Source: Zygophlyctis sp. KS116 (lineage: Eukaryota > Fungi > Chytridiomycota). From it: a stretch of DNA of 15,539 nt. Numbering within the stretch: position 1 is the first letter of the stretch; the number at the start of each line of letters is the position of its first letter. Under the pieces are notes generated by a model, which was not told the origin of the DNA, did not search any database, and was given only the letters and a program-made list of their open reading frames with translations. Shown here piece by piece: positions 1 through 15,539 of this stretch. The translations under genes were made by a program, and so were the position numbers. Where the stretch lies: positions 1-15,539 of the forward strand of contig BAAFSQ010000234.1 of the NCBI GenBank assembly GCA_054661495.1. The letters are read 5' to 3'.

Positions 1-19
1 ATTTACGTGATTTTTCGTG

Positions 20-1518
20 ATGATTATGGCAGATATGCAACAAAGGATTATGACAGTTGATGGTGACTTTGGTACTATTCGGTATAAAGGAGCATTGCCA
101 GGAAAAGATGGGGAATTTTGGGGAATAGAATGGGAAGATGTAGCAAAAGGAAAACATTCAGGAGTATTTCAAGGACAACAAATCTTTAAGCCAAATGTGG
201 AAAATTCAGCAACGTTTCTTCCAGTTCATTCAAAAAAGATTATATTTAAAAAAGGATTTCAGGAGGCTTTGATCGATAAATATCAGGAATCACAACCTGA
301 TGACGGTGTCTTATCGTTGGGTGATTCAACAATTGAAGTTGAAACGGTCGGTTGGGAGAAAATTAAACAAAAACAGCACAATCTTTCTAATCTGAATATT
401 GTGGGACTAGCAGGCTATGGAATCGGTTATTGTTCAAATTCGCTAAAAGTGCAAGATATATGTCCCAGAATTCAAGATTTAGATTTATCTAAAAATTTGT
501 TTGATGAATGGGCAGATATAAGGGATATAACTTGTGGGTTGTCAGAGCTGGAGTCTTTGAGATTGACATTAAATCGGTTTAATCCTGTTAATATTGATAT
601 GAGTGGTGCTTTTAACAAACTTAAAAGAGTTATATTAAATGCAACTCTAATCAGCTGGTCTGATTTGATGAAAGTTGCGCAAAATATGCCATTAGTAGAA
701 GAGTTACATTTTGGATGGAACAATGTCACAAAAATAGACACCATTGGTATTATTTTACAATTTAATATTTAGTCAATCTTAAATGTTTGAAATTGTTAAA
801 TTTAGAACATAATCTACTAGAATCTTGGGATGAAATTTCAAATCTGATAAATCTTTCAAATCTAGAGGTCTTGTATCTTCAAAATAATCCAATCAAGAAT
901 GTTGAATATAATACTGGGGATTTTCTTAAATTGAAAACGCTTAATTTGCATGAATCTAACCTTGGAAATTGGATGGATATTCACTCTCTAAATCTGTTTC
1001 CCTGTTTAACAGAAATAAGATTGAAAAATGTTCCAGTACTAGAAAATAATCCTGATGTTGCTGCTACATTAGCTGCAAGGCTAGGAAAAGTCTTAGTTTT
1101 GAATGGATCAAAGTTGAGCTCTCGCAGAAGATTAGATGCTGAACTTTGGTATATTAATCAGGGGTTCAAGGAAAAAGATATTCCGAATTTTGACCTTGTT
1201 CATCCTAGATACCAAGAACTCGTTCAACTTCACGGAGAACCTGTAGCTGTCCCTATTGAATTATCATCTAATATTCTCAAAGATCGCTTACTAGTCTTAA
1301 ATCTCAAGCACAAGGACAAAACCATTCAGAAAAAACTCACAAGTACATTCAAAGTCCGTGCACTCAAGATGCTAATGAATAAGCTTTTCAAAGTTAATTC
1401 TTCAGATAGTCAAATTATTTTACTTGAAGAACCAGTCATCGAACTTGATGATGAATGGAAAGATTTGGCATGGTATGATGTTAAAACCGGACATGAACTA
1501 GAGCTACTGATTAAATAG
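20..1518 (+). CDS. TBCE: Tubulin-folding cofactor E (CAP-Gly + LRR + C-terminal ubiquitin-like); join(20..746,773..1518), about 490 aa
   Basis: CAP-Gly motif GTIRYKG..WGIEWED..KGKHSG, LRRs (LDLSKNLF, LNLEHNLL, LYLQNNPI) and a UBL tail (ELDDEWKDLAWYDV). Removing the 26-nt intron 747-772 joins the two ORFs in frame (IDTI-V-NLKCLKLL). The start could be ATG 20 or 26. Confidence 0.93.
747..772 (+). other. 26-nt spliceosomal intron in TBCE
   Basis: gtattattttacaatttaatatttag; GT-AG, phase 1, restores the LRR frame. Confidence 0.9.
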
Positions 1519-1542
1519 TTTTTTCGTATATTCAAATTCTTT

Positions 1543-2109
1543 TTATTCTTCCTTGGTCCAAATATCTCCTTCATCATCATCGACCTCACCTTGAATCTCA
1601 TCTCCAAGATCTAGACCAGCATCGGACTGAAATTCTGACGAATGCTCTTTCCTTAAAATCCCAGATATTAAATAAAATTTAGTACCTATATCCCAATCAT
1701 CTTCTGCTAATTCTGAATATGAGTTATCATCTACACTTTTTGTCTCATCTATTTTGTCCGAATCTCGTTCCAAGAGATTATCGATCGAAAAGTTATTAGA
1801 TACTATATCCGCTGTAATACCATTTGAGTAATCATGTTCTGGACTTGATAAATCTGTGAATTCAAAAAACTCTGGATAATCAAATGTAGAACTTGAGCCT
1901 TGCTCCAAAGGAAACGATAGATCAGGCGTAGTTAGCGTCAAATCTGGCTCATCTGATGTTATGATTGAATCTAAGAAGGCTTCCCATTCATGATCTTCTA
2001 GATATTCTGGCTCACCAGGGGGCTGATAAATCATGTTTGACTTGGTCATATCAATGGCTCCATAAGGATCTGCAGACACCACGAATTTAGAATGCGGCTG
2101 TTTGGGCAT
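1543..2109 (-). CDS. Hypothetical very acidic, probably disordered protein (about 188 aa)
   Basis: Open frame filling the gap between TBCE and the DsbA-like gene; first in-frame ATG at 2109 (MPKQPH); D/E/S-rich; no family recognised. Confidence 0.6.
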   Translation of the reverse strand: MPKQPHSKFVVSADPYGAIDMTKSNMIYQPPGEPEYLEDHEWEAFLDSIITSDEPDLTLTTPDLSFPLEQGSSSTFDYPEFFEFTDLSSPEHDYSNGITADIVSNNFSIDNLLERDSDKIDETKSVDDNSYSELAEDDWDIGTKFYLISGILRKEHSSEFQSDAGLDLGDEIQGEVDDDEGDIWTKEE

Positions 2110-2161
2110 ATAGTCTAATTTCAAGGAAGCTTTTCTGTAAGAGTTATGAATCGAAAGTCTG

Positions 2162-2200
2162 CATGGGAAGTCAAAGATTGATCATGGGAAGTCAAAGATT
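2162..2200. repeat. Perfect 18-bp direct repeat CATGGGAAGTCAAAGATT x2 (21-bp period) in a divergent promoter
   Basis: Copies at 2162-2179 and 2183-2200, with a 3-bp spacer. Confidence 0.9.
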
Positions 2201-2241
2201 ATAAAAAAGCCTTCGATTAGCCTCAAAGTTTAACGCTTAAA

Positions 2242-2847
2242 ATGAATACAAAGCAACTTTTTGTTGGGACTAGCATTGGATCTCCTACAGCACCAAATGT
2301 ACTAGAATTTTTTTGGGATTATTGTTGCCCATACTCTGCAAAATCATTTAATATGGTATATAATCTTGTTATACCAACTATGGAGTCTTTGTATCCTGGA
2401 GAATTCAAATTTGTGTTTCGTCATTTAGCTCAGCCTTGGCATCCTCAATCAGCAATGATGCACGAGTCTGCAATTGCAGTAAGAATGATTGATCCTTCTC
2501 TCTTCTTTAAATATTCTAAACTTTTGTTTGAACGTCAGGAAGAGTTTTTTGACGATCAAACTTACAATCTTTCTCGCTCTGAAATATATTCTAAATTAGC
2601 AAATTTAGCTAAACAAGTTGGAGTAGATCAAGATAAAATGACTTCACTTTTGGCTTACAAAGATATTCCTGGAAGTCATAATTCTGGAAATGAAATTACC
2701 CAAAAATTGTTGATTTTAACTAGAATTGCTCGTAAACAGGGAATTCATTACACTCCAACAGTTTTAATTAATGGACTTGAAGACTTGTCTATTCAATCTT
2801 CATGGGATTTGGAGACTTGGAAAGCATATATGAACAAGCTATTATAA
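2242..2847 (+). CDS. DsbA/thioredoxin-fold protein (fungal Thioredoxin_4-like)
   Basis: FWDYCCPYSAK active-site region, QPWHPQS motif and the cis-Pro loop GIHYTPTVLING; AAAATG start context. Confidence 0.88.
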   Translation: MNTKQLFVGTSIGSPTAPNVLEFFWDYCCPYSAKSFNMVYNLVIPTMESLYPGEFKFVFRHLAQPWHPQSAMMHESAIAVRMIDPSLFFKYSKLLFERQEEFFDDQTYNLSRSEIYSKLANLAKQVGVDQDKMTSLLAYKDIPGSHNSGNEITQKLLILTRIARKQGIHYTPTVLINGLEDLSIQSSWDLETWKAYMNKLL

Positions 2848-2883
2848 ATTCAGAAAGAAACGTATATTTTTTACATTCTACTA

Positions 2884-6235
<3,352 letters not shown>

Positions 6236-6251
6236 ATTCTATTAGTCATCC

Positions 6252-6848
6252 ATGGTCACGCCCCTAGCACACTTGCCGCACTTTAAACTTATGATTTCCT
6301 CCTCATTTGATGAGCAAGTACATCTTCTTGAAGAAGACAGAAGAAAAGGAAGGTGCTGGTGCTGTTGGGAAGAAGATGAAACTGCCAACAATCCTCTGAT
6401 AAGAGTCTGCAAAGGCTGTAAAGATTTGGATCTTCAATGGATTCATCAGGATTGCATTGACCGATATATTTCTCTATTACCTCCCCCAAGAACTGGTCCC
6501 CTAATAGACTCTGATCAAGATTTTGCCTGCACCCGTTGTAAAGATCCATATATTGTTGAATCTAGAAGGACATATCCTCTAATTGCTCTTAAATCTGAAC
6601 CGTTTCTATTCCCTTCAATGATAATCATTACTCTATGTATGATTGTCCTTACAGCATCATGCATTAGTCTAATTATTGATAACCTGCACTCTGGCTTTGT
6701 CTTTTATTTTGATATACCTATTTGGATGATTGGAATGTTTATGTTGTTATTTTGTCATATGGTAAATACTGCCACTTGGATTCTAGTAATTCAATATTGC
6801 TCTGGTAGATGGACTAGACATGTATTACAGATTAAAGAAGATAATTAA
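6252..6848 (+). CDS. RING-CH (RINGv/MARCH-like) membrane E3 ubiquitin ligase with two TM helices
   Basis: CWCC..NPLIRVCKGC..WIHQDC..CTRC zinc-ligand pattern followed by two hydrophobic segments. The true start may be ATG 6291. Confidence 0.8.
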   Translation: MVTPLAHLPHFKLMISSSFDEQVHLLEEDRRKGRCWCCWEEDETANNPLIRVCKGCKDLDLQWIHQDCIDRYISLLPPPRTGPLIDSDQDFACTRCKDPYIVESRRTYPLIALKSEPFLFPSMIIITLCMIVLTASCISLIIDNLHSGFVFYFDIPIWMIGMFMLLFCHMVNTATWILVIQYCSGRWTRHVLQIKEDN

Positions 6849-6890
6849 CATTTTATGATTAGCAAATAATTATGCCACATCTATTCCAAA
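6481..6890 (+). repeat. Left copy of 410-bp direct duplication (3' part of RING-CH gene, 21-bp spacer, last 6 codons and stop of LEU5)
   Basis: Aligns without gaps to 14315-14724 (offset 7834), with 6 mismatches. Confidence 0.97.
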
Positions 6891-7322
6891 CAAGAAATTG
6901 ACCTTGTTCATCAGTCTTCCATCAAAGCTTTTGCCAGAGCTCTTGCCAAAGTCAGACGTCCCGAAGTTGATACTCACACTCTTCGCAATGGAACACTTAC
7001 AGAGCACGACTTTGCTGATACAATCAATTTGCTTCTTTCAATTGGTGAACAAACCGTCACTGCAATCAACTCAAATGTCCCAGTCAGCCCATTCCCATAC
7101 AACGTTAGCACTCACATGGACGTCGACTCCCGAATCAAAGTTTTGACTCGAAGAATCACAGTACACAAGTCTGAGATACCATCTGGTCGAGACACCAGCT
7201 CACAAGCTACTCATCTTCAACTCCGTCAGTTTATTGGTCAAGACTTGGCCGCTTTGGAGCTTTGTTTCGAGAATCAAAAGGATTTCAACGACTATACAAC
7301 AAAACAGTTCAATTGGAAATAA
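6891..7322 (+). pseudogene. 5'-truncated ORF of unknown family (143 codons, QEIDLVHQSSIKAFARALAKV...KQFNWK)
   Basis: The frame is open from the island junction to TAA 7322 with no ATG at or upstream of the junction. About 44% GC by hand count with strong C-ending codon bias. Confidence 0.6.
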
Positions 7323-7406
7323 ATTCTTGTTTCTTGTCATTTAAACAAAAGTATAATAGGTGTTGAATTTTCTTCATTTAACAAATATAGTAATTTCTCT
7401 CCATCC

Positions 7407-9618
7407 TTATAAATAGTACTTTATTGACATATGATTCTGAGAAATCAACTTTTTAATTAGAATAAACATATCCAAAGTTAATCCATTGCAACAGCCATTG
7501 CCATTTATAAATACAACATTATTATACTGTTCTTCTCTCTGATGGGTTCCCAAATATAACCACATCAATAGACTAACAGACTCATCGTTAGTCTTTGACT
7601 TTTTTAGTTGGCTTTGTATTGTCTTGTCACTTGAAAGATTAAAAGACGCCTTGCTTGAAACAGCAATATTACCCTTATTTGAAGGTAATATAATGTCGTG
7701 ATGAGCATTGTGAGTTTTACAGTTGTGAATGACAGCTAAAGGTAACTCTTGATTCACAAATGCCTCTTTTTCAGGTAAGATCATCCCTAAAGAGAAATCA
7801 ACATATATATCGGATAAAGTTTCCACTGTTTTTGCATTTGAAACGTTGTAAATGTTTAAAATTGAAAATAATTGTTGATTGGGATGTTCCAATTTATAGA
7901 GATAGTATTTTACAGCCAAACTAGAAGCAAATAATGATTCATAACACATCCCAAGATTATACAAATCGAGCTGCCTGAGCTTATCGTAGGATACGAACAG
8001 GTTATTGATATCCAAATTCGGAATTAATGATTTGCAACTGTCCACAATTCCAGCTCTTGTTTTCGTATAATCACCCATTTGACGATTGGTAGGAGTCTTG
8101 GCTGCCCACATTAGCCTAAAAGGTATGATATAGCAATTATCCAAATAAGGAAATATGATAGACATAGAAATCAGATGGGCCCATAAAATAGTCGTACCAG
8201 GAACACAAGAATTGATGTCACGAACTTCCCAATGAGCCCCACAACATAATAAAATGTGAGGAATATCATTACCAGTGAATTGAGGATTGTAGAGGAGTTC
8301 TGCAATTTCTGGATAGAACTGGATTGCGACATTTTCATAATCTTGAAGCGGAGCTATTCGGTCTGTAAGATATGAATTAGTTTTGTGATCAAACCATGCT
8401 AAATGAGCTAAAAGTAATAGCCTTGGAATCTTATATGAAGCATACACGAGAGAATTAAACATTTCTTCATCTTGATCTGTCATTATTACGCTTTGGCTCC
8501 CAATAACATTCTTATACTCTGTTCTTTGTTTCCAAAAGGTTTTGTAATCTTCCTCCTTGCGCAGAGTAGACAAAGACACAAACTGAGGGACGAATTTAGA
8601 CTTTTCTGTGATAAAGATGATATTTCCACTATTTGTGCCAGTACATATGCAAACTGGCTTGTGCAATCCAGCCAACTGAGTAAGCAAAAACGATAAAAAC
8701 GAATGATATATAACATGACTATCCTTAAATTTTGACTGGATTGTAGTTTGTTTCAATAATCCTTGAATTTCGTCAAGCAAGAATACCGGTGGAGACATGC
8801 AGTTGACTCCAAAAGCGAGATTGGTGAGGCGAATGTACTCGTCCATCATATCGTCTGCATTCCGTTTTAACGAGTTCTTTACCCACATTTTAAACCTAAG
8901 TTGACTTCCAATAATGGTAGTAATAGTCTCAAATTGACTGATTTTTTCAAAGTGAATTCCATCCACTTGAGTTCCATCAAACATACGGCATAAAAAGTAA
9001 ATCATCAAGCGAGTAAAGAATGTTCCAATGTCTTCTTCAGTATTCACAGCAGTTCTTGCAGCAGCACCGGCAAAATCAAAAGAGAGAATGCGACCATATT
9101 GAAGTGCATCAATAATCAAATTATTTTTCAAATTCTCTTTAACAAGCTGCATCCCTATAGCCTCCATAAACGCCGTCTTCCCCATTCCTCTACTAGTACT
9201 GCAAATAATTGGCTGATACTTTTCTACTTCCCTCTTTGATATTATCCAATTTACTTGCTGGATAACATTGTCTCTGGCCAAAAGAGCATTTTCACCAAAA
9301 TGCTTCAGGTACACTTCAATATCAGGATCAAAGAAGGGGAAATAGTGATTGTTTTTGGATTGATATATAGCAGAATCAAAAGGACGGATATCAATATCCA
9401 TAGCTGTTCCTGTTGTTATTTGGGAAACAATACCTTGATTTTGGTCTCTCTGCAATATTATAGTTTTCTGCTTTAGAAGCTCTTGCTCTTTGTCTCTGAG
9501 CTGCTCATGGTTTCCAAACTTTTGCTTTTCCTTTGGAGTCATAGTCCTTATCCAATAGCTCTTCAATAGCATCAAGTTTAGTGTTCAGTTTGTTGATTTC
9601 AGTTTCAATTTGGTCCAT
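7407..9618 (-). pseudogene. Crinkler-type (CR) P-loop NTPase + restriction-endonuclease-fold protein, with a frameshift near 9541
   Basis: Walker A STSRGMGKT, Walker B VFLLDEIQ and C-terminal HHDIILP..IAVSSKAS (PD-(D/E)xK-like). The probable N-terminus MDQIETEINKLNTKLDAIEELLDKDY starts at ATG 9618 in another frame. It may still be translated from ATG 9542. Confidence 0.7.
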
Positions 9619-9839
9619 TTGTTGAAAGAATTATTTTAAGTGAAAAAAGGTGGGCTACCATGAAACATCAACAGCAATGCAACGTCAATTTCAAATAAGA
9701 ACTAATGCTTTTGATTATAAATTAAAACTTTATTCCCTGCATTTGTTTTGCTCAAAGTTCCAATTGAATTCCATTGATTCGTTGTTGAAACGCATCTGCG
9801 TCTCCCTTGTCACTTGCATTCTTTGCTAAATTAATGTTA

Positions 9840-11886
9840 TCATGTAGAGTATGACACACATGATCCCACAGAAAAAGAATTTAATGCAGATGAACATGCA
9901 TTCCGTTTTGCTTCTGATTTAGATTTCCCTAATCCAGACGCAATGCATAAATTATCAAGCCAGATGTGACATGTAAAACATTAAAAAGATCAATCTATGA
10001 TATTTCATTCAGTTGTCGAACACAGCTTTTTGAGTCTTGGTTAAAAGATAATACTAAAAGAGGAAGAATTATCTGTTTAAAGTCTTCAATGTTCCAATTT
10101 AAATCAATTAGAATTGCTCCACAAATAGATTCCCAGACATCACTCCCAAATTTGGATAAAGAGTCTACTAGTCCGTGATTTTTAGCCAATACTGAAAAGT
10201 TTCGGTCACAAATTAGACCTTGTCTGGAATCATTCAATTCTCCAACAGAATTATTGTTACAAGATTTGAAAAGGAAAATTGTACAAATTATTTCTAAAGG
10301 CTGAATCACCCAGGCATTCAAGCCTTTTAAACATCTTTAAATCGTGCTTATTGCATATTTCAGTGCCTAATGCAGATCTTAAAAGATTTTTGTTTGAAAA
10401 ACTGTATTTCAGAGATTGTTCAACTTTTGATAATTCACCATTGCTATGAAGGATCTTTTTAGGAATATCAACTAACTTGCAATGTAAAACTCCAATGTCA
10501 TATAAAAAGTCTTTGCATTTATCAAGTCCTTTGCTTAAATAAATTGCTCCTAAAAAGGCTTCAAAGCAGTCTGCAATCATTTTGGTTGTTATTGAAAGCA
10601 AGTTTAGATTTTCACGGGTGAAAAAAGGTGGAATCTAGTCTTTTGCACGTAATGGTTGTGTAACAAGTAAATTTCCAAGATTCAGCTTTTGGCCAACGAG
10701 GTACAGATTTTTGTTTGACACTATTAATGATCTTGATGGAGATATAGGGTGGTCAGGAGCCATTTTCCATAAATCTACCGTAACTAGATACTTTAGTATT
10801 GAATCACCGATAAATTCTAGTTTTTCATAATTCATATAATCTTGTGCAGCGGGCGTTAAGAATGTTTCAACCAGGTGATTCATATCTGAATCCAATCCAT
10901 TCAAATCATTAAATTCGCTCAAAATGGCATGCACGTCAATGAGCGTATTGACAATGTGAATAAGCGAAATGCATCGATATGGTTGTACTAAGCATGATTT
11001 TTCTAACAAAAGTGCATCGGAAGTTAGATTTTGAAATTAGCCTTGCTTGAATTAGTATATCATCAGATAGATCACCATATCCTCGAGATTCAAAAAAAGC
11101 TCGGTATGTCATTTGCAAATCATCAGAAAATGAATCTAAAGTTATAATGCTTTCAATCCCCAGACATCTGTACAGATTTAGATTATGCTTGCTTCTGATC
11201 ATTAGATTAGTAAGATAGTCTGGACTAGATAGATCTTTAGGAGCAATATCAATTAGATTATATTGCAAATTTTGAATCTGTGAAATAAAATCCCAATCAA
11301 TATCCCATCCAACAGAAACGCCTTCCAGTCTGAAATGAATAGGACAAATCAAGTAGCTCTTTGAAGTGTTTTCTAGTTTTAAATTTGTCATGAGTTCAGA
11401 ACATATATAAATCTGAAATTTTTTGATCATTTCAATCTGAGAAACGTGAAGCTGATATGTTTTTGTATCTATAGAAATTTGATTCTGACTTATATTTGAG
11501 GTCCAGTTTATTTCTTTGTCTATGAAGTATACGCTTGGAATATTCAAAAGAGTAGGCAAAAATACTGCAAATCCTTGGCCGTATGCTTTTAATCGCGGGA
11601 TGAATAGATGGATGTAAACATTTACAAGATCAGATTCCAAATTTGGCTGAATGCAAGACACGGAAAGAATTTGTTTTTGTCATCTTCAATGCTATTGTAT
11701 GATCCAAAAGCCGTGTTTGCAGTGCTATTCTTTTGAAGTAAGTCATTTTCCGAATATATTAGAGTTTGAGAACTTTTAACTTGTCCGAGTTCAATACTGC
11801 TTAATCCAGGATCCAAAACCTTGAAACTCTTTATAGAAACAATCTTCTCCAGATCTTTCAACAAATCCCAATTCTTCCATTACCAT
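9840..11886 (-). pseudogene. Dicer-like pseudogene (platform/PAZ-like - RNase IIIa - RNase IIIb - dsRBD; no helicase visible)
   Basis: RIIIa YEKLEFIGDSILK / KMIADCFEAFLGA; RIIIb KRLECLGDSA / SDVWESICGAI; dsRBD ASGLGKSKSEAKRNA. Frameshifts at about 11635, 11022, 10297 and 9985, and a TAG in place of the W.PP tryptophan at 10635-10637. Confidence 0.85.
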
Positions 11887-11960
11887 TTTTACTTTAACTA
11901 GAGTCCCTTGATTCTCTATTTACAAAGGAAGAACTCAAAGAATGTAACGAAATTGAAAAT

Positions 11961-12659
11961 ATGGACTGTGAATTATTAGCATTTCATTTTACTGCTAAAT
12001 CTAATCTAGGATGGATATCCTGGAAAGAAAGAGAAGCATCGTTATTTAGATTATTGGAAAGAATATTTAATGCGCAGAGCTGTTGTATGAATTTTACTAA
12101 TCGCTACAATGAAATCATTATAGAATTTAGTGCTCCGTGGAGTCAAATTGAAAGGTATTTAGAAAATATTTATAATAGAGTCTCAAAGTATGTACGTCAG
12201 GGACAATTAGCAAGTGAAATAGATAAGACTCATGGCATTTTAAAGGATTGTGTATTGGCTAAATTAGTTTCTGTTCCCGGGAAAAGAGTTGATGGTAAAA
12301 GTAGTCTAGAAAGTATTCAGGATCGCGTATTAGCACTTACATCAATTGATTATACTCGGAAAAGAGAGATTGTCGCATTAACTACACAATTTGATTTTTT
12401 AAGAGATAAAGCACAGGCAGCTCTAGATATATTTGAAGAGGAATATGATCAAAAGCTTCATGATAAATGTATCTCTAAATTCCAAAATATTGAAAAGAGA
12501 ATTATTGAAATTGTTGATCAGGATTTGAAGATTTTAAGATCTGATATTTGTAATCTTTCTGATTGGAAACTTGTAATTCTTAAACAACTTGTAATTTCCA
12601 CTGTTAAGAACTTTTTAGCCCTCTTAGAAAGTGAAACATTGAATAAAGCAATTCGCTAA
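11961..12659 (+). CDS. Hypothetical alpha-helical protein, possibly the 3' exon of a truncated gene
   Basis: 232-codon ORF. The frame stays open upstream to 11898 and begins at an acceptor-like tttttactttaactag (AG 11900-11901). Confidence 0.5.
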   Translation: MDCELLAFHFTAKSNLGWISWKEREASLFRLLERIFNAQSCCMNFTNRYNEIIIEFSAPWSQIERYLENIYNRVSKYVRQGQLASEIDKTHGILKDCVLAKLVSVPGKRVDGKSSLESIQDRVLALTSIDYTRKREIVALTTQFDFLRDKAQAALDIFEEEYDQKLHDKCISKFQNIEKRIIEIVDQDLKILRSDICNLSDWKLVILKQLVISTVKNFLALLESETLNKAIR

Positions 12660-12762
12660 AAGCTCTGCTAAAACTGTCCAATCATACCGAAAAGTGAGAA
12701 AGATTCATTAAAGTTTATTGATACCATTAAAAACCCAGTGGGAAAAGGCATACAAATCATAT

Positions 12763-13059
12763 TCATCGGCGACGGCTACTGTTATATCGCCTTGCAGCGT
12801 TAGCCCAAAAAGACCTCTTTTGATAAGATGAAAAGGATTTGATTGTTTTCTCTGCTTTTCGAGCATTAGATGACCAAACAGCTCCAAGTGGTCTGAAATA
12901 AGTTCCTCTTCCAACCCAGGACGATTTGTTTCCATTACGAACATTTCTAATGTGTTCACCACATCTTACAGATGGACTTCTGGTGGTCATACCAGTGTAA
13001 ATGCTTTTCGACCCATCATTCCTTGTGCTTTCACCCACGTAAACCCATCCAGCAGTCAT
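12763..13059 (-). CDS. Small stand-alone GIY-YIG endonuclease (UPF0213/SLX1-like), 98 aa
   Basis: GWVY..IYTGMT..R.GEH..ARKAEKTIK match GIY-YIG motifs including the catalytic R and E; AAAATG context; basic tail. Confidence 0.82.
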   Translation of the reverse strand: MTAGWVYVGESTRNDGSKSIYTGMTTRSPSVRCGEHIRNVRNGNKSSWVGRGTYFRPLGAVWSSNARKAEKTIKSFSSYQKRSFWANAARRYNSSRRR

Positions 13060-13148
13060 TTTATTTTAGGAAAGGTGTTTATTAATGTATCAAATCATGG
13101 AAATTATTATCTCTCAATTTCACAGACTAAACAACAACTTCATATTTT

Positions 13149-14143
13149 TCATTGTAAAAGAGAATATAGTTTGCCAACCACTTCTGACAGTCCATCTTGC
13201 TTGGGAACACCATTTGATTCAAACCCAATGACATACTTTCGTCAACTAAGATTTCTTCATCTTTACTCCTGATAAATATCCACTGAGTAAAGTTTGTCAC
13301 AATTCCACACACCATATTGCTTCCATCCAGTTCAACAGCAACTTCACATCCAACTAAATTTTGGGCCATTCCCTGTCTGAATTTTTCATCTTTGGCTTCA
13401 ATGATGCAAATTCGTTTGAGGCCTCTGATGAGAATGAATTCAAAGTGTTCATTAGCATGCACATTGACCCCATTCAAGTCTTCTTCTACTTTCAAAACAA
13501 CGTCGGGTAATATAGATACAACACACATGATAACAGGGGCAATCAAGTGCAAACGTTTCGCTTCATTTCCACTGAGTAAAGTCATTCCATAACATTTCAT
13601 CACAAGAGTCAAGTACTTTGACAACAAAGAAAAAGTTTCTTCAGGAATAGGCATGACTGGTTCATAATATGACTTCGTTTCAGCGTCAAATATCTCTTTC
13701 ACGGCATCCCAAGTGGTTTTGTTGTATGGAGTGGAAACGTCGTCATCTTCGGTTGCACCTTTGCGCTTTTTGGAATACCTGCTTTTGTCTAGTACAGCGT
13801 TTAAAGCTTTTTGCCTTTTCACTCGATTAGGATGCATTGCTTTTCTTTCAAGACTGATTTCTGATGAAGAATCACCAATAGCAACAAATGTTTTCACAAT
13901 GAGAGGATTTCCTCCAGAATTTCCTCCCACTAATAAAGAAGGAGAGACTTCAACATCAATTTCAACCTCTTGCCAATCCTTGAGTTGATAGAGAGTGATG
14001 GGGGTCTTTGAAGGGATGCAGAGTTGAGGCTCCTTTCTGATTTCCTTGAGAAAGTCATCCACATATTCACATTCTTGAATAGAGACTTTTGTAGGACCAA
14101 ATGTCTTTGCAGGCGTCACATACGAAACCCAAAGTTTTGACAT
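13149..14143 (-). pseudogene. Crinkler-type effector: N-terminal Ubl-like header + restriction-endonuclease-fold domain; frameshift at about 13233
   Basis: Header LWV..PTKVSI..CEYVDDFLKEI..NPLIVK; NEAKRLHLIAPV, FEF..CIIEAK, QGMAQNLVGCE, GIVTNF.QWIF. A family-like tail VIGFESNGVPKQDGLSEVVGKLYSLLQ* lies in a shifted frame ending at 13149; the uncorrected ORF ends at 13127. Confidence 0.75.
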
Positions 14144-14314
14144 TTTTGTTTTTTAGTGGGAAAAGTCCTCTCGAATTTCACACTTTATTGATAATAAAAC
14201 TTGTATATTAAACTGGACTGGATTTATTTAAGAATTATCAATTTGGATGAATTTATCAGAGAATTTCATTTAAAATAAAATGGTATCATTCGGTGCTCTA
14301 TCTAACATACTTAT

Positions 14315-14724
14315 CTCCCCCAAGAACTGGTCCCCTAATAGACTCTGATCAAGATTTTGCCTGCACCCGTTGTAAAGATCCATATATTGTCGAATCTAGA
14401 AGGACACATCCTCTAATTGCTCTTAAATCTGAACCGTTTCTATTCCCTTCCATGATAATCATTACTCTATGTATGATTGTTCTTACAGCATCATGCATTA
14501 GTCTAATTATTGATAACCTGCACTCTGGATTTGTCTTTTATTTTGATATTCCTATTTGGATGATTGGAATGTTTATGTTGTTATTTTGTCATATGGTAAA
14601 TACTGCCACTTGGATTCTAGTAATTCAATATTGCTCTGGTAGATGGACTAGACATGTATTACAGATTAAAGAAGATAATTAACATTTTATGATTAGCAAA
14701 TAATTATGCCACATCTATTCCAAA
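14315..14724 (+). repeat. Right copy of 410-bp direct duplication (headless RING-CH fragment + functional 3' end of LEU5)
   Basis: 98.5% identical to 6481-6890; lacks the first six RING zinc ligands and any ATG before the junction. Confidence 0.97.
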
Positions 14725-15539
14725 AGACTTTTTCATATACTCATAGACGTAAAATGATATCGCAAACATTGGTGTAACTTTGAGATATCCAATAGATAAT
14801 CCAACCCAATAACCTCTAAATCCCTTTCTCCTCCAAATGCCTCTTGCGGCATCTAAAGTTGAATGATACACTACAGTTCCAGGAATACCAGAAGATCCAC
14901 CAATTTGCATAACTCTCCTTATAACTTCAAAAGGATATGATGCAGTTTGCGCCAATGCACCTGATAATGCACCAGATCCTAAATATGCCCATGCTTTTAA
15001 TCTCTTTTTTCCATTTGAATCTATTGTAGTAGTATACTGAGATGAATATGCATAATTTTTAAGATTTTCATAAGTTAAAAAAGATACTCCTGCATATGGT
15101 ATCATTCCATAGATTGTAGGAGCAAATCCTTTGTAAAAATTAATTAAACGTCTCTGAGAGACTGGTCCCTCATTATAGATCACTTTACAAGTTTCTAAAA
15201 GACTTAGAGATGTTTGAGCATTTGCAGCCAATGCCAACCTTACTCTTAATAAATCCAGTGGGTATGAGAAAAGTACAGCGGTACATCCTATAATTAAATA
15301 TTTTTCTATTAATTCATACCTGCTAATGATCCTGCCAAAAACTTTTTTAAATGTGTTTCTGACTCTTTATTTGGTATCATGATTGACTTTAATTGTTCAT
15401 ACGCCATAAACTTAATTGCTGCATAAGGGAAAATACGGAGTAAAGTTGCTGAATGTCCCTGATAAAGTCCCAAAATCCCAGATTCTTGAAAGATTGCATT
15501 CGCTGCTCTAAATACTCCAAAAAATGTTCCTTTTTCTTA
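14704..15539 (-). CDS. LEU5: Mitochondrial coenzyme A carrier (SLC25A16/A42-like), 5'-partial; exons about 15529..15320 and 15287..14704
   Basis: GLYQGHSATLLRIFPYAAIKFMAYEQ signature, carrier motifs YPLDLLRVRLA and YPFEVIRRVMQ; runs off the window end. Confidence 0.9.
15288..15319 (-). other. 32-nt intron in LEU5
   Basis: gtatgaattaatagaaaaatatttaattatag; joins AGSLA-G-CTAV. Confidence 0.92.

Follow-up and report, generated by a model that had tools for sequence, protein, structure and literature searches.

DNA transposons of the textbook kind duplicate a few bases of their target, and duplications of hundreds of bases are, to our knowledge, tied to one LINE family only. The stretch of DNA considered here (hereafter the window) is a contig of 15,539 nucleotides from the chytrid Zygophlyctis sp. 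KS116 (BAAFSQ010000234.1 in assembly GCA_054661495.1), which is contig C234, taken whole, of an assembly of 12.7 Mb in 1175 contigs. It holds an island of 7.4 kb (6891-14311) that belongs to a family of DNA transposons with terminal inverted repeats (TIRs) and lies between two copies of a 413-bp host segment, where a RING-CH gene and a mitochondrial carrier gene converge. We lean towards reading this locus as a recurring one-ended insertion of a TIR transposon with Crinkler-type cargo and a giant target duplication. The layout looks like a gene-sparing, recurring way of inserting, because the same family shows it at three other places in the genome.

Dualen LINEs in mutation-accumulation lines of Chlamydomonas make de novo insertions with target duplications whose median length is 900 bp (Lopez-Cortegano et al. 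2023, PMC9977147). The present locus resembles them in having one defined end and a target copy of hundreds of base pairs on both sides, the length of which would correspond to the distance between the strand breaks. However, Dualen is a retroelement that uses target-primed reverse transcription, whereas the chytrid family has inverted repeats, makes 6-bp duplications when complete and shows no reverse transcriptase domain above the Pfam threshold in the island.

One-ended transposition is known for Tn3-family elements in bacteria and for RAG in vitro, and the bacterial one-ended products keep the normal short duplication. We know of no eukaryotic genome family for which the one-ended case has been established. 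It has been proposed for Dada transposons (PMC3706591). The likeness to the window is in one precise end joined to the target and another, variable boundary that is not a terminus; a duplication of 0.1-1.5 kb, in contrast, lies outside the description of one-ended transposition.

In Campbell or 'ends-in' integration, as in phage lambda and yeast integrative plasmids, a circle enters by a single crossover. Integration of a circle by homologous crossover has been proposed for transposed genes of Arabidopsis, where the flanking repeats are single at the orthologous site (PMC2869330). The window likewise has direct repeats that are single at the empty site; the two genes are restored, and recombination between the repeats could release the insert again. 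Unlike those cases, the window has a transposon terminus at one boundary and a repeat that differs from those of the other loci, and no recombinase, common att core or circle was seen. Alternative transposition offers a further parallel. Hybrid-element insertion of P elements, a subject of Preston, Sved and Engels in 1996, reportedly yields products that keep both termini. The tandem duplications made by maize Ac from reversed ends are arranged as element-segment-element-segment, and their new joint shows 8-bp duplications (PMC3744419). In both systems a cut-and-paste transposon generates host duplications beside the element, as may have happened here, but the window has one element, one terminus and one end-joined boundary inside a cargo gene.

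The duplicated target and its uninterrupted allele

A repeat search and a pairwise alignment both recover the gap-free direct repeat (6481-6890 and 14315-14724, spacing 7834 bp) that had been recognised in the sequence-only reading, and the repeat search found no other long repeat in the window. The homology begins at 6478 and 14312, with an extra mismatch at 6480, so that the repeat is 413 bp long with 406 identities (98.3%). The features that define the locus are as follows.

6252-6848, plus strand: complete RING-CH (RINGv-like) gene, a 198-amino-acid (aa) open reading frame (ORF) with a weak Pfam RINGv match; its 3' part lies within the left repeat copy
6478-6890, no strand: left target copy, made up of the 3' 371 bp of RING-CH, a 21-bp spacer and the last 21 bp of the carrier gene
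6887-6890, no strand: microhomology at the left junction, CAAA, 4 bp with which the host copy ends and the cargo-gene fragment begins (alignment with C594 and C541)
6887-7321, plus strand: internal fragment of a multicopy 279-aa gene, about codons 20-164, reading inward; 97-99% identity to C594 and C541
14282-14311, minus strand: TIR forming the right terminus, the sole terminus in the window
14293-14682, plus strand: headless RING-CH remnant, an open 129-aa frame that starts within the terminus (predicted ORF only)
14312-14724, no strand: right target copy, which begins immediately after the terminus and extends into the intact carrier gene
14704-15237, minus strand: last exon, complete, of the mitochondrial carrier gene (named LEU5 in the sequence-only reading); Pfam Mito_carr E = 5.5e-30; matches a 176-aa gene call in contigs L031 and L032

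The left copy completes the RING-CH ORF and the right copy completes the Mito_carr exon, and both genes match the uninterrupted alleles in L031 and L032, which bears out the earlier claim that the duplication spares its neighbours. RING-CH in the window and in these contigs is of equal length, with 4 residues different.

An empty site with RING-CH and the carrier gene 21 bp apart had been predicted, and it was found in contigs of two public freshwater runs. The Logan contigs of four runs (X1 to X4, X1 being the run labelled with the organism) were compared with window positions 4900-10899. Contigs of X2 (10,977 bp) and X3 (32,752 bp), two runs with nearby accession numbers and identical variants that may be one strain, pass 6890 directly into carrier-gene sequence without the insert. 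Both empty-site contigs, L031 and L032, were retrieved by way of the exact product of a neighbouring 629-aa gene (Pfam Myb_Cef), and their gene calls place RING-CH and Mito_carr at the predicted distance. When window segments 1-6890 and 14311-15539 are aligned to L031, they fall on neighbouring stretches of it that overlap (99.3% and 98.3% identity); the target segment is single-copy at the empty site (L031 12132-12545), as against two copies in the window. The right end of the window overlaps contig C34 by 77 bp, and C34 continues colinear with L031.

The two copies of the target are not identical. A base-by-base comparison of 6481-6890 with 14315-14724 gives six differing sites (6557, 6573, 6617, 6647, 6695 and 6716), and the final 174 bp are the same in both. 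The left copy runs unbroken from the upstream host DNA, like the empty allele. Where the copies differ, the right copy agrees with the empty allele, except at 14314 and 14451. Relative to the empty allele, both copies share 4 differences (6496, 6500, 6501 and 6672); a further 5, of which 4 are synonymous and the other is H108Y, are private to the left copy, and the right copy has one synonymous change and a change in the junction codon at 6480. Run X4 has T at 6557 on a background that otherwise resembles the empty allele, implying that at least one of the left-copy differences is a segregating polymorphism. The pattern of variants fits later allelic exchange in the functional copy, use of the homologue as repair template, a Campbell crossover within 6481-6556, or a mixing of haplotypes by the assembler.

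Transposon terminus, left joint and recurrence at other loci

With the exception of a spacer at 7322-7413, the island consists of sequence of a multicopy family. Its right 1.2 kb comprises a 338-aa gene with 170 bp upstream and ends in the 30-nt sequence 14282-14311, which closes many other copies of the family, with flanks that diverge immediately beyond it. The genome has 32 sites of this terminus and none of a reversed control pattern. The ends of contigs C194 and C585 carry it as identical inverted 77-mers (C194:1-77 and C585:1-77), and their flanks meet at the equivalent of window 9855-9860 with a 6-bp duplication, CACACA. A second canonical pair, C71 and C223, has identical inverted ends and the 6-bp duplication ATCGTC. 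Because of these inverted ends and the six repeated bases in both pairs, 14282-14311 is the TIR of a DNA transposon family that makes 6-bp target duplications. At 14311 the terminus abuts the right target copy directly, the host sequence starting at the equivalent of 6478, and no second terminus was found in the window even when 3 mismatches were allowed. The standard duplication of the family is thus 6 bp, as against 413 bp here. The statement in the sequence-only reading that duplications by DNA transposons are always short holds for complete members, but for this family it has to be qualified in view of duplications of 113 to at least 1491 bp.

The left edge is of another kind. The 279-aa gene of which 6887-7321 is a fragment has a complete ORF on C594 and on C541. 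Judged by alignment with these, the edge is not a terminus but lies at about codon 20 of a terminal cargo gene, apparently joined to the host copy through the 4-bp microhomology. A relative of the same gene on C3 starts about 190-250 bp inside the family terminus and reads inward; because of this position, some 250 bp seem to be missing from the left end of the element that forms the island.

A search for other long host duplications flanking family elements, which had been suggested before, identified three further loci. C7 has a direct repeat of 543 bp with 100% identity (79813-80355 and 81756-82298) around a 1400-bp insert. At its start this insert has the family terminus, in front of which stand 6 additional bases identical to the first six of the terminus; the other end of the insert is a non-terminus. 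The left copy completes a 409-aa gene, and the right copy carries the upstream region and start of an ORF that may be the next gene. Within the C7 insert is a 300-aa ORF in which inspection by eye shows an E-A-K nuclease-like motif; throughout this text 'nuclease' refers to such by-eye motifs and to leads from Atlas clusters only. One open frame extends out of the insert and into the 3' part of the 409-aa host gene that is duplicated here. On C129, positions 19692-21182, from 2 bp past a terminus, equal 14293-15783 at 100%, a duplication of at least 1491 bp with copies 5399 bp apart. On C168, 113 bp abutting a terminus recur 2.7 kb away at 94% identity (2401-2513 and 5118-5229), an older case. 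One terminus motif is present near each of these three loci. The terminus of C204 has no duplicate of its flank on the same contig, and the flank on C136 is a high-copy tandem family, which makes it uninformative for this comparison.

At all four positive loci (the window, C7, C129 and C168) the terminus lies 0-6 bp from the boundary of the duplication, which makes coincidence very unlikely. The duplicated host segments (413, 543, at least 1491 and 113 bp) are unrelated between loci. Since the duplicated host segment is different at each locus, the repeat appears to have been made from each target and not brought in as shared homology.

Origin of the duplication

In the one-ended reading, the right end is a normal transposase-type junction between the family terminus and host base 6478. 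The left end has apparently lost its terminus, the promoter and about 19 codons and has probably been end-joined to host base 6890 on the 4-bp microhomology. The 413 bp between the two strand breaks would have been copied on both sides by repair synthesis, resulting in a giant target-site duplication. This could have happened in one aberrant insertion, in which, after a single-end strand transfer, the element is copied from the target 3' end and the second strand is broken at a distance. Alternatively, an ordinary insertion with a 6-bp duplication in RING-CH may later have been cut at one end, after which the host end would have re-copied the far flank and rejoined the trimmed element. Stop codons in this genome can lie 21 bp apart, and copies that bear such duplications would persist since they leave the genes on either side intact. 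We read the repeat as target DNA re-copied by host repair and not as an att site or as homology borne on a circle. The break-repair fallback of the sequence-only reading is closer to the data than the circle it preferred.

Several observations weigh against this account. No contig listed from any of the runs bridges 6890/6891, so that the left junction rests on the assembly alone. The repeat contig of X1 (806 bp) carries the letters of the right copy only and continues 396 letters beyond 6890 without a break. Five private changes in the functional left copy, against one or two in the idle right copy, are unexpected if the copies were identical at birth. The read depths in X1 misfit any simple model. 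At C129 and C168 the evidence covers only the junction on the terminus side. Finally, no transposase was found within 1.5 kb of 20 termini or in the island, so that the insertion chemistry is inferred.

The test of the junctions proposed in the sequence-only reading has come out in part. On the 6481 side the branch is seen in X1, in which the flank contig is identical to the window and ends at 6510, where a contig would be expected to break off if another sequence were attached at 6481; the bridge across the left junction is the part that was not obtained. Graph simplification beside a 20-fold repeat could hide that junction: in X1 the 279-aa gene fragment (6887-7321) has a depth about 20 times that of the flank. 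The depth comparison of island and flanks, also proposed earlier, was made in X1 and gave 335 for the flank, 614 for the repeat contig (1.8 times the flank), about 7500 at 6900-7100, about 6100 at 7414-7537 and only 98 for the unique spacer 7322-7413; it is not used as evidence. The end of the repeat contig, at 15120, comes immediately before a group of sites (15121-15150) that distinguish the window from the empty allele, and this suggests that two haplotypes were present in the sample. Because a graph assembler cannot invent joints, both joints must be present in the reads, either on a single chromosome or on a circle that accompanies an empty site; the circular and the integrated form have the two joints in common.

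Artificial joining by the assembler is an unlikely competitor. In one form, a cycle in the short-read graph would have been unrolled, and the true molecules would be an empty chromosome together with a separate element, extrachromosomal or located elsewhere, made of the island and one host segment. In the other, two haplotypes would have been threaded into one path, and the 98% identity would be due to differences between alleles. The assembly has contigs with 77-bp overlaps at their ends, and the repeats on C7 and C129 are 100% identical and longer than short reads, so they could have been placed by loop resolution only. The X1 contig that passes 6890 with right-copy letters, its end before the variable sites and the spacer depth of 0.29 of the flank all point the same way. 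However, a de Bruijn assembler cannot make up the words that span the two novel joints, the branch at 6481 is seen independently in X1, and the genome has no separate empty-site contig or spare copy of the repeat. A terminus at the boundary in four loci is also unlike random misjoins.

Integration of a circle by homologous crossover, the preferred model of the sequence-only reading, is less probable still and is not favoured. The circle of 7834 bp would have held the island and one 413-bp host segment and recombined once with the empty locus; an ordinary insertion allele (position 6478) could have been its source, the circle closing on the 4-bp microhomology at 6890/6891. One crossover would give precisely this final structure, and the left junction could be the joint that closed the circle. 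The variants too would fit a crossover within 6481-6556, the right copy having the terminus-side T at 6480 followed by letters of the common type, and the left copy having C at 6480 followed by a foreign haplotype. The same model was put forward by Woodhouse et al. for the transposed genes of Arabidopsis (PMC2869330). But it demands three rare steps (insertion, imprecise circular excision with host flank, and re-integration), and demands them independently at four loci with four different host segments. No recombinase was found, no circle junction beyond the integrated form is seen, and X1 has no branch at 6483 such as would mark an ordinary-insertion donor allele. The right boundary is a terminus of a TIR family with 32 termini and 6-bp duplications, the left boundary is a truncated internal point, and the duplications at the three other loci are unrelated. 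A tandem duplication of the 413 bp by slippage or unequal exchange, with transposon material entering the junction later, is the least credible of the explanations and very improbable. Tandem duplications are common and unequal exchange had been listed in the earlier reading, but the insert would have had to fall exactly between the end of copy one and the start of copy two, with a terminus at the boundary in four independent loci, and no bare tandem-duplication allele was seen among the contigs examined.

The one-ended reading can be taken a step further, tentatively and with some doubt: the TIR family may regularly make one-ended truncated copies by target-primed DNA synthesis, with duplications of 0.1-1.5 kb that rebuild the interrupted genes. 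Features of LINE-like, target-primed insertion are present in the defined end at 14311, the truncated gene at 6887, the 4-bp overlap and a duplication that varies from 113 to at least 1491 bp; counter to a LINE-like element, no reverse transcriptase domain exceeds the threshold, and each end of a complete family member carries the inverted repeat. If this were true, the family would parallel, at the level of DNA, target-primed reverse transcription or the one-ended transposition of bacteria, and cargo of Crinkler-type nuclease and NTPase would spread through an extremely gene-dense genome with little damage. Even in the more general form, repeated duplications of 0.1-1.5 kb at one-ended insertions would be a new outcome of class II insertion, and would show mobile conflict genes (Crinkler-type nucleases, RNase III and a P-loop NTPase) settling without killing host genes. 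The direct repeats would make each island reversible by recombination. The headless gene copies would be raw material for chimeric genes, and on C7 an open frame already leads from the insert into a duplicated host exon.

Cargo, neighbouring genes and minor observations

Between the left fragment and the right terminus the island has the following features.

7322-7413, no strand: spacer of 92 bp with no other match in this assembly
7407-9575, minus strand: cargo gene for a 722-aa P-loop NTPase, with a Walker-A region and sub-threshold DnaA/AAA Pfam matches
9995-11864, minus strand: cargo gene for a two-domain, Dicer-like RNase III, split over several ORFs; Pfam Ribonuclease_3 in three consecutive ORFs
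11961-12659, plus strand: cargo ORF of 232 aa with a 95% paralogue on C585 and only a sub-threshold RVT_N match
12763-13059, minus strand: ORF of 98 aa with a GIY-YIG-like motif seen by eye only, a lead; no Pfam match
13127-14143, minus strand: Crinkler-type gene of 338 aa that points from the terminus into the island; PF20147 Crinkler is present in the nearest Atlas clusters, with a score in the highest range

The remark in the sequence-only reading that no integrase is visible agrees with the Pfam result, in which no island ORF has an integrase or recombinase domain at E <= 1. For the 338-aa gene, the other cargo and the ORFs adjacent to termini, a dedicated Pfam follow-up gave nothing above threshold. 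The N-terminal residues of the 338-aa gene, about 85, are common to many family copies, and an E-A-K nuclease-like motif can be seen by eye. The nearest Atlas clusters of the 722-aa NTPase are eukaryotic 'archaeal ATPase'-like proteins and one Crinkler cluster, which are leads only. This NTPase has a paralogue at 94% on C194, and the RNase III gene has one at 91% on C585.

The unit with the 722-aa gene occurs in another arrangement in the public runs. A low-depth contig in X2, X3 and X4 joins window position 9827 back to 7349, so other strains also have this 2479-bp unit (7349-9827), arranged either as a tandem pair or as a circle; a search for terminal repeats around it, at 7322-7413 and 9790-9870, gave none. 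A segment of about 70 bp precedes the 279-aa gene on C594 (2341-2419) and C541 (714-784) and its relative on C3 (554-613). The segment is also present inside the 3' end of the 232-aa ORF of the island (12546-12613, 78-80% identity) and may be a shared promoter-like module.

Near the flanking genes, a 177-aa paralogue of RING-CH lies 8.3 kb downstream of it (L031:20819-21352; C34:50211-50498), with 72% DNA identity over 6345-6646. A second piece matching 6345-6483 in an X3 contig, 8318 letters past 6890, was considered as the missing half of a split RING-CH and was rejected, since it is this 72%-identical downstream paralogue. Exact-protein look-ups returned no record for RING-CH, the 338-aa gene, the carrier exon, a thioredoxin-like gene, the C7 aminotransferase or the C7 cargo ORF, and no relative turned up when JGI metagenome contigs were scanned with RING-CH. 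An 801-bp insertion on C34 (57755-58555), some 1 kb past the carrier gene, is missing from the X3 contig (L031:13614-13635); this insertion has no family terminus and is flanked by an imperfect duplication of about 14-16 bp.

The middle block of the island has a paralogue (91-94%) that is split over C194 and C585 by an insertion of the same TIR family at the equivalent of 9855-9860, the site of the CACACA duplication. Between the RNase III gene and the 232-aa gene, the C585 copy has three extra segments of 198, 598 and 578 bp.

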